DNA from: Podarcis melisellensis
Taxonomy: Eukaryota
Reading direction: 5' to 3' (one strand)
Assembly (NCBI GenBank): GCA_964234715.1
Contig: OZ174279.1
DNA length: 64,000 bases
Below, piece by piece: positions 1 through 10,813 of this stretch; position 1 is the first letter of the stretch; each line of letters begins with the position of its first letter. The notes below the pieces were generated by a model. That model was given only the letters and a program-made list of their open reading frames with translations. It did no database searches and was not told where the DNA came from. Position numbers and translations under genes: made by a program.

Positions 1-1097
1 GCAGTTTCCTTGCCGAAGAGCAGGGAAGAAAAAATGCTGGTAATTTGTGTACCATCCCTGAACAATCTAAAGACTACATGCCATGCGCAAGGGGGAGGAG
101 AAGCACCTAGCAAATGAAAACGCAAGAAGGAAGTTGACTGACTGGGCATTGGTATAGTTGGTATCGCTCCAGCTGGATCACAGAGTCAGATCTGACAGTT
201 TCCACAATGAATAGCCTCCCACGCGCTTCTCATATTAGTAGCTATTATGAAATAACAGAATAAAGTTCAGGTTTGTGTGATAATACAGGCAAATACTTAG
301 GACCCTCCAGTTAAAAATATTCATATTACGAAAGCTTTTTTTTGTTAAAGCTGTTTCCATCACATTCATTTTTTAAAAGCAACACTTTCCTTATTACATG
401 TGTTTATTATATTTATAATCCTGCTTTTGAGGAAAACAAATAAATATATACCCAAGCAGATTACATAACTTGAAGTACAATACTCAATGCAGTGTTTCTG
501 TTTTTTAAAGAGGAATTCAAGGCACAAAATTAAACCCAACAGTACATTTAGGCATTTGTGGGTGCCAGACACTTAATCCATGGACTCAACAAGTGTTAAG
601 GGAACAAAGGGAAAGGCCATTAAGAAGGCAAATGCTCTGAGCCAAATAGCAAAGAGGTGGGGCCCCTCCTCCAGCTCTTAGATAGTCAGGAGGACAAAAG
701 CCAGAGTTTAGAGTCTGTGTGTAATATGAGCTAGAAGTAAAAGCTGCTGGCTGAAAAGCCAGAGAAGCAGAACATGATGTTTGATTTCTGTTTGAATCCA
801 AGGCTGCAGCTGTAACAGAAACCAGATCCTTTTGGGGTGTTAATGCTGTGAACCCCTCCATTGTAGGCTCAGGTTGTATATATGTGTAAATAAACTATAT
901 ATCATAAACATACAACAATCTCTGCCGTGCCTCATTGACAAAAGGAAAACATGAACCCTGGGTGAGTGCCTGGAACCCTTAGAACCTCACACTGCAACAA
1001 TACTAGTTACAAGATAGGTAGCCGTGTTGGTCTGCCATAGTCAAAACAAAAAAATTCCTTCCAGTAGCACCTTAAAGACCAACTAAGTTAGTTCTTG

Positions 1098-1135
1098 GTA
1101 TGAGCTTTCGTGTGCATGCACACTTCTTCAGATAC
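1098..1135 (-). ncRNA. Minimal type I hammerhead ribozyme motif in PLE pLTR
   Basis: Minus strand reads GUAU-CUGAAGA-A-GUGUG(CAUG)CACAC-GAAA-GC-UC-AUAC: stem I GUAU/AUAC, CUGANGA and GAAA core, palindromic AGCU in place of stem III. Confidence 0.8.
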
Positions 1136-1380
1136 ACTGAAACAGAAGTTTCCAGACCCTTGTATATAGTGAGAAGGTGGGGAGGGGTATTACTCAGAAG
1201 GGTGGTGGGAATGGGTGATTGGCAGATAGCTGTGATGAGCCTGTTGACGACTCTTAACGACTGCAATAGGTCTTACAGGAAAAAGCAAGGGGTGAGAAGG
1301 TGGAAAATGGCTTTGTCGTGTATAATGAGATAAGAATCCAATGTCTTTGTTCAGACCAGGTCTCTCCATGGTTTTAAACT

Positions 1381-1416
1381 TATCTGAAGAAGTGTGCATG
1401 CACACGAAAGCTCATA
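1381..1416 (+). ncRNA. Minimal type I hammerhead ribozyme motif (inverted copy)
   Basis: TAT-CTGAAGA-A-GTGTGCATGCACAC-GAAA-GC-TC-ATA; core intact, stem I only 3 bp. Confidence 0.75.
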
Positions 1417-2313
1417 CCAAGAACTAACTTAGTTGGTCTTTAAGGTGCTACTGGAAGGAATTTTTTTTGTTGTTGCAACAATACTAGACAGAGACAGCAG
1501 AATGTTAGGAAGATCCCTTATACTGGTCCCTGTAGAACGGACTTGCAGCAGTCCTCAGATAAACATATTAAACATATTAAAATAAAAAATCTGGCACTGA
1601 TACATAGAATTGCATCATTCCAAAAATGAATAGTCCCTGAAATATATTTTGAAAGTTCAGGTTCTGAAGGCGGATTAAAGGAAGGTCTCCAGCAAAAACC
1701 TTTTCCAGCCCTGCTAGCAGAGATCATTTCTAAATAGATATGTTGGGTAATGAACTTGAGATGTTCTGCATCCCAAACATGTTACTAAGCCTTTGTAATG
1801 CTAGAAGGATATAAAATGTGGCCTTAGTGAAGGACATTACATAGTGTGTGTGCGTGTGTAAAAAATGGTTTGGGGGATACTTGACAAAGCTGAGTAGCTT
1901 TTTAAAATAGAGCAGCTGAAGAGATAAGGAGAAACAACTAAGTTGAGAAGCTTAGGAAGAGAAGGAAGCAGATGGACAAAGATTCAGAAAGTAGAGGAAC
2001 CATGAACATTGGCAACAGACTGTGACAGAAACAGCAACATGCTTTCTCCTGAGTCAGATCATGGGTCCATCTAGATCAGTACTGTCTATTCTACATTGCC
2101 TGCCAGTAATTCTTCACGGTTTTATTTTGGAATTTTCTAGCCCTGGCTGGAGATGCCAGAGGCTGAACCTGTGACATTTTGCATGCAAAGCATTTACAAT
2201 TGCTTATTCAATACATTTGTTATAATTAAATTAACTGGGTGCATGTTGGGATACTGGGGGTTTTGCTGCTTTTTCCTCTCTGGGGGGTCTGGGCTGAGGT
2301 TGCGGCTGCAGAG

Positions 2314-2673
2314 ATGGACGTCTTTTTAATGATCCGACGTCACAAGACGACCATCTTCACAGACGCCAAGGAGTCCAGTACGGTGTATGAGCTGAAAAGA
2401 ATTGTTGAGGGGATACTTAAGAGACCCCCAGAAGAACAAAGGCTATACAAGGATGACCAACTGTTGGATGACAGCAAAACCCTCGGAGACTGTGGCTTCA
2501 CCAACCAGACGGCACGACCTCAGGCCCCAGCAACAGTTGGCTTGGCCTTCAGAGCCAGTGAAGATGCCTTTGAGCCCCTCCGCATTGATCCCTTCTCCAG
2601 CCCCCCGGAGCTCCCAGACGTGATGAAGCCCCAGGACTCTGGCAGCAGCGCCAACGAGCAAGCGGTGCAGTGA
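2314..2673 (+). CDS. ELOB: Elongin B processed retrocopy, intact 119-aa ORF (retrogene or very young processed pseudogene)
   Basis: [39 protein letters not shown]...SSANEQAVQ is elongin B. No introns; AATAAA at 2898-2903; A-rich tail 2927-2937; perfect TSD ATAATTAAATTAACTG at 2222-2237 and 2938-2953. Insert spans 2238-2937. Confidence 0.9.
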
Positions 2674-3434
2674 GAGGCCAGAGGGCGACAGAGCGAGCTG
2701 CACAACCCGTGGCGCCCCTTCCCCACCACCCACTCCCTCCCTCAACCCTCCGGCGTGGAGAGAGACATGGCACTGTCCCACCCCTCCAATCCAGATCCCC
2801 CTTTTACTCCACCCCTCTCTATACAAGACCACACCTCCTTCCAAGCCCCTCCCCACTCATCAAACAGAGCAATGTTTTCATTTTTGGTTTTGAAAACAAT
2901 AAAAGTTCAGCTGTTGTTTTTTTTTCAAAAAAATAAAATAATTAAATTAACTGTTCTGAATTTAAAATATACATGTGTTTGTGTTAATTAAGACTTCAAA
3001 GTGATTGTGTTCTGCCATTTCTCATCCATTGTACTGTGCTCATTACACCTTAATGTCTACCACATGTTCTTTTGGGGCATTCTCCCCTCACACAATTACA
3101 GTCCTGTGAAAGGAAGAGCAGGGCTGCTCCTGCTGCTTCCACCCCCAATGTTTGCATCCTCACTGGTCCTGTCTTCTGGCATTCATGCATTTAACAGGGA
3201 ATGTCTGAATTGGGCAGTTTGCTATATATAAACAAAGGTTTCCTATATGATTTAGAACTCAGCAAGCATGGTTGCAATCTCTTTCTCACACAAGTGTGAT
3301 TACTTGAAGGTAGAATTCCTGAAAGGACTATTGTTCGTGCTGGCTAGGGCTGATGGGATTTAGAGTCCAACAATATTTGGAAGGCTACAGTTTAGTCACC
3401 TCTCCTTTATTGGATTTAAGGCTGCAATGTTATA

Positions 3435-3664
3435 CAGTGGTACCTCGGGGTACAGACGCTTCAGGTTACAGACGCTTCAGGTTACAGACTCCGCTAACCT
3501 AGAAATAGTACCTTGGGTTAAGAACTTTGCTTTAGGATGAGAACAGAAATTGTGCGGCGGCGCAGGAGGCCCAATTAGCTAAAGTGGTACCTCGGGTGAA
3601 GAACAGTTTCAGGTTAAGAACGGACCTCCGGAACAAATTAAGTTCTTAACCAGAGGTACCACTG
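3435..3664. mobile_element. Tc1/mariner-pogo (Tigger-like) MITE
   Basis: TIRs CAGTGGTACCTC...GAGGTACCACTG flanked by TA; close relative at 31899-32113. Confidence 0.85.
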
Positions 3665-3934
3665 TACAGAGTTGTTTTGAATACTGTATTTACCCCCTGC
3701 CCACTAACCCAACTTCTGGAGGCAGCTTGCAATATTCTTATGGGTTTTCTATCATATTTCTGTTAATAGGACTACCAGTGTGGGTTGGACTTGACAAAGG
3801 AGTGTTAATAGCTTGAGATGTTCAGGTGACATGTCTTATGAGAGCTAATTGCCATATGAAAGATTACTGTGTGACAAAGGACTAGCCCGGGATATTGTGA
3901 ATAGAGGAAAAATATGAGAGGTAGGCAGGGAGCA

Positions 3935-4289
3935 GGTGGCGTTGTGGGCTAAAGCCTCAGCGCCTAGGACTTGCCGATTGAAAGGTCGGCGGTTCGAATC
4001 CCTGCGGCGGGGTGCGCTCCCGCTGCTCGGTCCCAGCGCCTGCCAACCTAGCAGTTCGAAAGCACCCCCGGGTGCAAGTAGATAAATAGGGACCGCTTAC
4101 CAGCGGGAAGGTAAACGGCGTTTCCGTGTGCGGCTCTGGCTCGCCAGATGCAGCTTTGTCACGCTGGCCACGTGACCCGGAAGTGTCTCCGGACAGCGCT
4201 GGCCCCTGGCCTCTTGAGTGAGATGGGCGCACAACCCCAGAGTCTGTCAAGACTGGCCCGTACGGGCAGGGGTACCTTTACCTTTACCC
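3935..4289 (+). mobile_element. Sauria SINE, near full length
   Basis: tRNA-like head (GGTGGCGTTGTGG...GGTTCGAATCCC), (ACCTTT)n tail, 13-bp TSD TAGGCAGGGAGCA at 3922-3934 and 4290-4302. Confidence 0.9.
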
Positions 4290-6676: not shown

Positions 6677-6981
6677 GGGATGCAGGTGGCACTGTGGGTT
6701 AAACCACAGAGCCTAGGACTTGCTGATCAGAAGGTCGGCGATTCGAATCACTACGACGGGGTGAGCTCCCAGCTCCTGCCAACCTAGCAGTTCGAAAGCA
6801 CATCAAAGTGCAAGTAGATAAATAGGTACCGCTCTGGCGGGAAGGTAAACGGCATTTCTGTGCGCTGCTCTGGTTCGCAAGTAGTGGCTTAGTCATGCTG
6901 GCCACATGACCCGGAAGCTGTACGCCGGCTCCCTCGGCCAATAAAGCCAGATGAGCGCCGCAACTCCAGAGTCGGTCACGA
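6677..6981 (+). mobile_element. Sauria SINE, 3' end missing
   Basis: Shares diagnostic blocks with 3935-4289, e.g. CCTGCCAACCTAGCAGTTCGAAAGCA and GTGCAAGTAGATAAATAGG. Confidence 0.88.
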
Positions 6982-8029
6982 GTGGATCTGGCGTTATCCA
7001 GGAAAAAGCTCCAGATATTTGAGCTTCCCGGGATTCTGTAATGCTGGGCTGCCTTGTTGAATGTCAGACAGGACAGAATGTTAAGCCATTAATGCTTTAC
7101 TGATTAATTTCATATTCTGATTGGAAACTGCATGTTTAGAATTAATAGTTAGATAGCGTTGATTGACTGGGACTAGAATAGGGATCCAGAAGAAGTGTAT
7201 ATACGGCCAAGTGCTGGTCACCAGCAGTTAGTTAGTTGGATTGGCAGCTCATGTTGGTTGGTGTTCCTGGTAGACAGCCAGAAGGAAGAAGACCTGAAAA
7301 GAATAGAGGGTGACTGGAGAACCGCTGGGGTCACTGAATGACTTGGCTTAGGGTTACAAGTCAATGGGAGAACTTGAATTGACAAAGGCAAGTGTGGCAA
7401 GGGGCAGAATCACACACAAAAGCCTCCCCACATCCTTGGGCACATCAGTTCCCTGTCTGTCAACTTTCCACCTGTTCATGGGGCAAACCTGCACTGGGGC
7501 TTCTACTTGTGTTTGTCTGGACGTGAGTAGAATCCCTCACATGATTAGGGAACCTTCTTTATCAGGATCCCAGATAGCACAAAAGTTCTACCCACATTCA
7601 AATGAAGTCAAGTAGAAGTGCCATGCAGATGTTTAGAATGAGGGTGGAGGAGGAGATGCCTGAGGGTGTTGGGGTGGGGCTTCCATGTGAGCCTCTGCTT
7701 CCACCTTGACTGGAAGGTGTCAGTAGGTATGTCACTGAACATGCCTATGGTCTACAGCCATCCAGTCTCAAAAGCTGGAAAGAATACGGCCACTTGTGCA
7801 CCAAAAATAGCCCACAGCCAAAAGCACATAACTCCAGATCCAGAATTAGGGAAGAAGTGCAGCTAAATCAAAGGCCAAAACAGAAAGGAAATCAAGTATC
7901 CTGGAAGGAACTCAAAGGACAATTCTACATAGCAACCAACCAGGTAACTGAAAGAAAGTCAGAATGTTCTGGTAGGAAGCCCTAAATGCCAACATGGAGT
8001 CAGGAGAGGCTGTGCAAGTCTTGGACTAG

Positions 8030-9802: not shown

Positions 9803-10813
9803 ATGAATTTCGGATCGGATTCTCACTACTTGGCCTCTTCCTACAGGAAGATCTTCGGGGAGCCTCCCCGCTACTCCTCCCGCCTGGGCAGCTCGACGGC
9901 GGGCAGCAGCTACCGCTCGCAGTCGGTGTCCCGCAGCAGCCATGCCGCCTCGTACCGGCTGGCGCAGGCGGAGAGCCTGGACCTGAGCCAGGCGGCGGCG
10001 GTGCACGACGAATTCCGCCTGACGCGCACCAACGAGAAGGAGCAGCTGCAGGGCCTCAACGACCGCTTCGCCGGCTACATCGAGAAAGTGCGGCAGCTGG
10101 AGCAGCACAACCGGCTGCTGGAGAGCGAGCTGGGCGCCTTGCGGCAGCGCCACGCCGAGCCCAGCCGGCTGGCCGAGCTGTTCCAGGCCGAGCTGCGCGA
10201 GCTGCGCGCCCAGCTGGAGGAGACCGAGGCCTCCCGGGCGCAGGCGGCGCTGGACCGCGAGCGGCTGGCCGAGGAAGTGCAGCGCCTGAGGGCGCACTGC
10301 GAGGACGAGGCCCGCGCCCGGGCCGAGGCCGAGCAGGCGCTGCGGGCGCAGCAGCGCGAGGTGGACGGCGCCACGCTGGCGCGCCTGGCGCTGGAGAAGA
10401 AGGTGGAGGCGCTGCTGGACGAGCTGGCCTTCGTGCGCAAAGTGCACTCGGAGGAGCTGGCCGAGCTGAGCGCCTCGCTGCAGGCGCCCGCGCTGGCCGC
10501 CGTCGAGCCGGACTCCCCCAAGGCCGACCTGACGGCGGCTCTCAAGGAGCTGCGCGGCCAGTACGAGGTGCTGGCGGCCAAGAACCTGCAGGCGGCCGAG
10601 GAGTGGTACCGCGGCAAGTTCGCCAACCTGAGCGAGCAGGCGGCGCGCAGCAACGAGGCCATCCGCGCCAGCCGCGAGGAGATCGGCGAGTACCGCCGCC
10701 AGCTGCAGGCGCGCACCCTCGAGGTGGAGAGCCTGCGCGGCGCCAACGAGTCCCTCGAGCGGCAGCTGCACGAGATGGAGGAGCGCCACCACGCCGAGGC
10801 CGTCGGCTTGCAG
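9803..10813 (+). CDS. INA: Alpha-internexin exon 1
   Basis: Type IV IF head ([15 protein letters not shown]) and rod start ([25 protein letters not shown]); donor CAG|GTGAGG. CDS join 9803-10813,13115-13239,14624-14936 = 482 aa; synteny with PCGF6/TAF5. Confidence 0.93.

Follow-up and report, generated by a model that had tools for sequence, protein, structure and literature searches.

Introduction

Processed copies of mRNAs mobilized by the L1 machinery are known in mammals and have been surveyed in non-mammalian chordates (PMC3136929). The gene for elongin B has given rise to a whole family of such copies in mouse, where 12 Elob pseudogene loci are described (PMC7102984). The mouse family includes Elobl, an Elob retrocopy that has a retrotransposon promoter, is translated and is highly expressed in oocytes, as well as the lncRNA Sirena1, which contains an antisense Elob pseudogene and is a source of siRNAs against Elob (PMC7102984).

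Here we describe an intronless copy of the ELOB mRNA in a lizard of the genus Podarcis, located on the plus strand at positions 2238-2937 of a contiguous stretch of 64,000 nucleotides (in the following, the window). The copy resembles L1-mediated retrocopies of housekeeping genes: it is intronless, poly(A)-tailed and promoterless, is flanked by a target site duplication (TSD), is inserted at an A/T-rich target of the endonuclease type, and derives from a highly expressed parent. It differs from the typical case in its Podarcis host, in being unusually young and clean, and in the empty sites that are found in several congeners. With the mouse Elob family it shares the parent gene and the repeated retroposition. 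Elobl differs in having gained a retrotransposon promoter, and Sirena1 in transcribing its Elob copy in antisense.

We regard the copy as an ordinary, if clean, example of gene retroposition, of a kind already well known. It leaves the knowledge of elongin B and of retrocopies unchanged, and would be notable only if it were found expressed in RNA data. The insertion is a datable squamate retroposition event for which the parent, the empty sites of several congeners, and copy-specific marker alleles are all in hand. The copy is therefore convenient as a presence/absence marker in Podarcis systematics and would be a witness to recent L1-type mRNA retroposition in the lineage.

Structure of the ELOB copy

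The copy consists of a 5'UTR, an ORF, a 3'UTR with the signal AATAAA, and an A tail (Table 1). The TSD pair brackets the insert exactly: homology to the parent mRNA begins at 2238 and the A tail ends at 2937. The parent homology itself ends at 2926, 23 nt past AATAAA, where the parents run into unrelated sequence and the window runs into A7TA3. The GC content rises from approximately 40% in the flanks to 52-63% within the element.

Table 1. Features of the ELOB copy and of its target site (positions refer to the window; parent positions to the ELOB loci of P. muralis, L003, P. lilfordi, L004, and P. raffonei, L005)
Feature	Position	Strand	Remarks
Left TSD, 16 bp, ATAATTAAATTAACTG	2222-2237		Perfect direct repeat; P. 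raffonei and P. lilfordi have one copy of it at the empty site
Exon 1 equivalent, 76 nt of 5'UTR plus ATG	2238-2316	+	Parent L003/L004/L005 7925-8003; GT follows in the parent
Intact 119-aa elongin B ORF plus stop	2314-2673	+	Only S64N relative to Podarcis ELOB (P0130), codon change at 2504
Exon 2 equivalent	2317-2451	+	Parent L003 11224-11358, AG/GT on its sides
Exon 3 equivalent	2452-2560	+	Parent L003 12035-12143; contains a copy-specific G>A (2504)
Exon 4 equivalent, end of CDS plus 3'UTR	2561-2926	+	Parent L003 13056-13419; AATAAA at 2898-2903; copy-specific G>A (2893); TT inserted (2914-2915) in comparison with the congeners' parents
Poly(A) remnant A7TA3, 11 nt	2927-2937	+	Parent loci have no A tail
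Right TSD, 16 bp, ATAATTAAATTAACTG	2938-2953		Perfect copy of the left TSD

The ORF product matches the ubiquitin-like domain PF00240 (E = 3.3e-9), and its residues 1-119 align end to end with residues 1-118 of the solved elongin B structure 2fnj_B (E = 9e-69). The product shows the features of the elongin B family, namely an N-terminal ubiquitin-like domain and a conserved C-terminal tail, and is 99% identical to Podarcis ELOB.

The insertion point can be read from the empty-site sequence (..TTGTT|ATAATT..); at the priming nick, the bottom strand reads TTAT/AA. The consensus of the L1 endonuclease is TTTT/AA, and the target in the window is thus one mismatch away from it. An earlier note, made from the letters of the window, had listed an uninterrupted 119-aa elongin B ORF, a 3'UTR with AATAAA and A-tail, a perfect 16-bp TSD, a TT/ATAA nick site and many intact CpGs. 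All of these were recovered: the ORF by translation and by the two protein matches, the polyadenylation signal and the two repeats at the positions in Table 1, the nick site on the bottom strand, and the CpGs by comparison with the parents (see below). The tail is shorter than the term A-tail may imply.

The 5' ends of a transcript contig from a relative and of a processed copy in Zootoca lie 25-31 nt beyond the start of the ELOB copy. These longer 5' ends indicate that the copy in the window begins in the start-site region or just inside it, and hence carries no promoter. An upstream ATG is located in the 5'UTR (2243), and its frame of 28 codons (2243-2329) overlaps the main start codon. Since exon 1 matches the Podarcis parents at every position but 2263, the upstream ATG is a trait of the parental mRNA.

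The parent gene

The parental ELOB gene consists of four exons that extend over approximately 5.1 kb in P. muralis, P. lilfordi and P. raffonei. Each of these loci adjoins a gene for a trypsin-like protease, and the chromosome differs from the one that carries INA. Compared exon by exon with these congeneric loci, the copy aligns in four collinear blocks whose borders correspond to GT-AG introns, with identities of 98-100%. Lacertid ELOB proteins were recovered by a protein search, and an exact look-up of the product of the copy matched no record. The product of the parent (P0130, 119 aa) and the product of the copy differ at residue 64 (S versus N, respectively) as the sole difference. The statement of the earlier note that vertebrate ELOB contains introns therefore holds for the three Podarcis assemblies, each of which has a four-exon parent. 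The window's own taxon is represented by the sequencing run X1, whose contigs common to parent and copy stop exactly at the exon borders. These breaks show an intron-bearing parent in the same sample as the copy.

Presence and absence among related lizards

The INA loci of three congeners were compared together with 10-kb flanks. The flanks of P. raffonei (L006) and P. lilfordi (L007) can be aligned as far as 2237 and again from 2937/2938, and the two parts overlap by the 16-bp target, of which there is a single copy; both are clean empty sites. P. muralis (L008 3955-3965) lacks the sequence corresponding to window 2083-3460, approximately 1.4 kb of which approximately 0.7 kb is flank, and the junction is occupied by SINE-like sequence. 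Because the target-site region itself is missing, P. muralis is uninformative for the insertion. In two further organisms, B and C (runs X4 and X5), one contig joins 2221 straight to 2938 and represents an empty site; the flanks of these organisms differ from the window by 1.3% and 1.8%, respectively. The copy is therefore absent from the four informative taxa (P. raffonei, P. lilfordi, organisms B and C).

All public runs were compared as contigs. Runs X1-X3 represent organism A, the window's own taxon; they contain 84-90% of the words and derive from one sample. This is probably the sample from which the assembly was made, and the runs therefore do not provide independent support. One contig of X1 (1500-2267) runs unbranched over the left junction and 30 nt into the copy, which is the limit in a 31-mer graph if the sequence from 2238 onwards is also present at another locus. 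A further contig (2863-3460) spans the right junction. Both junction contigs are at single-copy depth (126-135), no contig for an empty allele was found in X1 (one sample of the window's taxon), and the sampled individual is apparently homozygous for the filled site. The check for presence or absence in related lizards that the earlier note had proposed thus results in a site that is filled in its own taxon and empty in four relatives.

Divergence and age

Over 6,529 aligned intergenic sites, the window differs by 3.25% from P. raffonei, by 3.78% from P. lilfordi and by 4.06% from P. muralis, and 1.76% is private to the window's lineage. The window belongs to none of the three species.

The copy differs from the parents of all three congeners by six substitutions (2263, 2504, 2511, 2690, 2752 and 2893) and by the TT insertion at 2914-2915. 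Four of the six differences appear to be common to the parent of the same species, an assignment that rests on Logan contigs of X1, which lose minority variants. At 2511, 2690 and 2752 the shared X1 contigs match the letters of the window; alternative contigs are missing there, and the depth does not fall. The contig over the left junction stops at 2267 and not at 2293, which implies that another locus also has T at 2263. The two remaining positions behave differently: at 2504 the letter of the majority contig of X1 is G and that of the window is A, and the copy-specific contig begins at 2863, that is, at 2893 minus 30. As a best estimate, the copy-specific changes amount to two G>A substitutions (2504 and 2893) per 689 nt, or 0.29%, perhaps together with the TT insertion; the divergence is approximately 0.9% if the parent of the same species differs at all six sites. 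Of the 20 CpGs common to the three Podarcis parents, 19 are kept in the copy, and the one that is lost (2689-2690) appears to be lost in the parent of the same species as well. The retention of CpGs fits the youth of the copy.

The major clades of Podarcis split about 16.7-9.8 Mya (PMC8114931). Under the assumption that the private branch of the window dates from these splits, a divergence of 0.29% translates into approximately 1.6-2.8 My, or roughly 1-3 My with a wide error (Poisson range approximately 0.2-10 My). The empty sites place the insertion after the lineage of the window had separated from every relative examined. Of the description as a very recent copy, the youth stands, with approximately 0.3% divergence from its own parent and four relatives with empty sites; the copy is not necessarily 'very' recent.

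We also observe that the shared X1 contigs that cover window 2316-2823 have a depth of 330-407, compared to 126-135 in the flanks, approximately threefold where twofold is expected. Another X1 contig joins 2676 to 2785, that is, it lacks 2677-2784, at a depth of 117. The excess depth and the skipping contig may reflect a third near-identical ELOB copy, or GC-dependent coverage.

Coding constraint and expression

Among all possible single substitutions in the ORF, 4.4% create a stop or destroy the start (computed). With approximately one substitution in the ORF, and only 4.4% of substitutions disabling, an intact frame is expected under neutrality. The intact ORF is therefore no evidence of constraint. 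The branch of the copy itself has one non-synonymous and no synonymous change, too few for a dN/dS ratio. Asparagine at residue 64 is native in 31 ELOB homologues, and those checked by name are all from ray-finned fish; from this comparison, S64N is probably harmless. The sole amino-acid change being conservative, any protein made from the copy would probably be functional.

The 5' flank of the copy is AT-rich (CpG o/e 0.23) and consists in part of an old multi-copy SINE fragment; nothing in its sequence suggests a promoter. Run X15 (organism G, guessed to be RNA) contains a contig of 703 nt that corresponds to an ELOB mRNA of the parent type and has 8 differences from the copy in the window. 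We assume that the copy is not expressed.

Further processed copies of ELOB in lacertids

At least two further processed copies of ELOB are found in lacertids, one in P. lilfordi (L001) and one in Zootoca vivipara (L002). Both are 94-95% identical to the copy in the window and, like it, are intronless and derive from the same parent; they are located on other chromosomes. In contrast to the copy in the window, which is the only intact one of the three, they are independent, older and damaged. L001 and L002 were considered as orthologues of the window copy and rejected, as their flanks share only repeats with the window and likewise with each other. Together with the mouse loci, the three copies identify ELOB as a frequent source of retroposition.

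L001 (8028-8474, P. lilfordi OX395133.1) is truncated at both ends, has lost the start codon, and is annotated as a 145-aa 'elongin-B isoform X1' (CAI5782898.1). The annotated protein takes its N-terminus from an out-of-frame reading of the 5'UTR and bypasses the true ATG; the locus is probably a mis-annotated pseudogene. L002 (7894-8603, Zootoca vivipara OY735904.1) is a frameshifted processed copy annotated as 'LOW QUALITY PROTEIN elongin-B-like' (XP_034966616.1). Its 5' end lies 31 nt beyond that of the copy in the window, and its 3' end lies 13 nt past AATAAA in a long (AAC)n tract with approximately 25 units; the sequence GTGACACC is repeated at both of its ends.

Origin of the copy

We consider it highly probable (roughly 85%) that the locus is a neutral processed copy, a pseudogene in waiting. 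According to this reading, a mature ELOB mRNA from the four-exon parent on another chromosome would have been reverse-transcribed into AT-rich, repeat-rich intergenic DNA. L1-type machinery would have nicked the target at TTAT/AA, with priming at the poly(A) tail, and the duplication would go back to a second nick at a distance of 16 bp. The insertion would have taken place in the Podarcis lineage of the window, after its split from P. raffonei, P. lilfordi and the taxa of X4 and X5, and after the parent had gained several lineage-specific changes. No promoter would have come along; the only changes since then would be two G>A substitutions and, perhaps, an insertion of 2 nt, and its frame would be open by youth, not by demonstrable conservation. 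The earlier note had proposed L1-type TPRT, and the exact exon joins, the intron-bearing parent, the poly(A) site with its A tail, the TSD and the four empty sites bear this out. That L1 was the source of the enzyme, and that the copy is neutral, is what we infer from these observations.

The same intact ORF, with a strong start context from the parent, would also be expected of a functional young retrogene, transcribed from a promoter that happens to lie upstream, or by read-through upstream of INA, and serving as a second source of elongin B similar to Elobl in mouse oocytes. The earlier note had raised such an expressed second ELOB, with an added dosage, as its other possibility. For such a retrogene there is a precedent in mouse, S64N as the only amino-acid change is tolerated in nature, and the copy is apparently homozygous in one individual. 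At such an age, however, an open frame is expected by chance, and one non-synonymous with no synonymous change is no sign of constraint. The reading is unlikely also in view of the start inside the 5'UTR region with no promoter carried, the 5' flank with its AT-richness, its old SINE fragment and its low CpG o/e, and the lack of the copy in all four informative relatives. Under this unlikely reading, the locus would be a newborn functional gene, that is, an expressed, species-specific second elongin B in its first few My, before any regulatory or coding divergence.

Slightly less probable still is a copy made by a reverse transcriptase other than that of L1, for example from another LINE clade or from a Penelope-like element. 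Many LINE clades are active in lizards, and a young Penelope-like insertion is located 750 bp from the copy. The A tail is short and interrupted, and the Zootoca copy ends in (AAC)n and not in poly(A), a hint that other machineries act on ELOB mRNA. Against this, the end at the poly(A) site with its A tail, the 16-bp TSD and the TTAT/AA target jointly constitute an L1 signature, and the copy has neither LINE-derived 3' sequence nor a microsatellite tail. The relocation of a sole copy, which the earlier note had kept as a fallback, a DNA-level duplication and an assembly or cDNA artefact are refuted by the intron-bearing parents in congeners, the contigs of the same sample that break at exon borders, the short-read contigs that span both junctions, and the TSD with its empty sites. 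Nothing was found in favour of these three after testing, and their probability is close to nil.

Genomic surroundings

The copy is located approximately 6.9 kb upstream of INA and on the same strand. Exon 1 of INA starts at 9803, and its product is 99% identical to the alpha-internexin of P. raffonei. A RAWUL fragment on the minus strand (36.2-36.6 kb), a sub-threshold Pfam match, is consistent with PCGF6; a Pfam search of the putative first exons of PCGF6 and TAF5 resulted in nothing beyond this match. Of the INA-PCGF6-TAF5 block that had been proposed for the region, INA is therefore confirmed, and the RAWUL fragment fits PCGF6.

Window 1007-1473, a Penelope-like element with hammerheads according to the earlier note, is missing in P. 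raffonei, P. lilfordi and P. muralis. In all three congeners the flanks abut at 1006/1474, and these empty junctions indicate that the Penelope-like insertion is also specific to the lineage of the window. A GC-rich repeat of approximately 360 bp is present in two copies (3914-4289 and 6677-7018), both of which are absent from the orthologous positions in the congeners. The same repeat has matches elsewhere in the congeneric loci, for example in P. lilfordi (L007 22256-22622) and P. muralis (L008 20913-21281). The two copies are therefore lineage-specific insertions of one repeat family. Window 3433-3666 is a very high-copy repeat with sharp edges at 3432/3433 and 3666/3667, and its summed contig depth is in the millions in all DNA runs; it is probably a SINE.

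In addition to the ELOB contig, run X15 contains a contig of 708 nt from the left flank (window 1517-2236), which ends 1 nt before the insertion point; on the right flank, no contig was found in this run up to 3275. The stretch that corresponds to 1517-2236 is covered in the P. lilfordi annotation by a minus-strand gene model of 91 aa.
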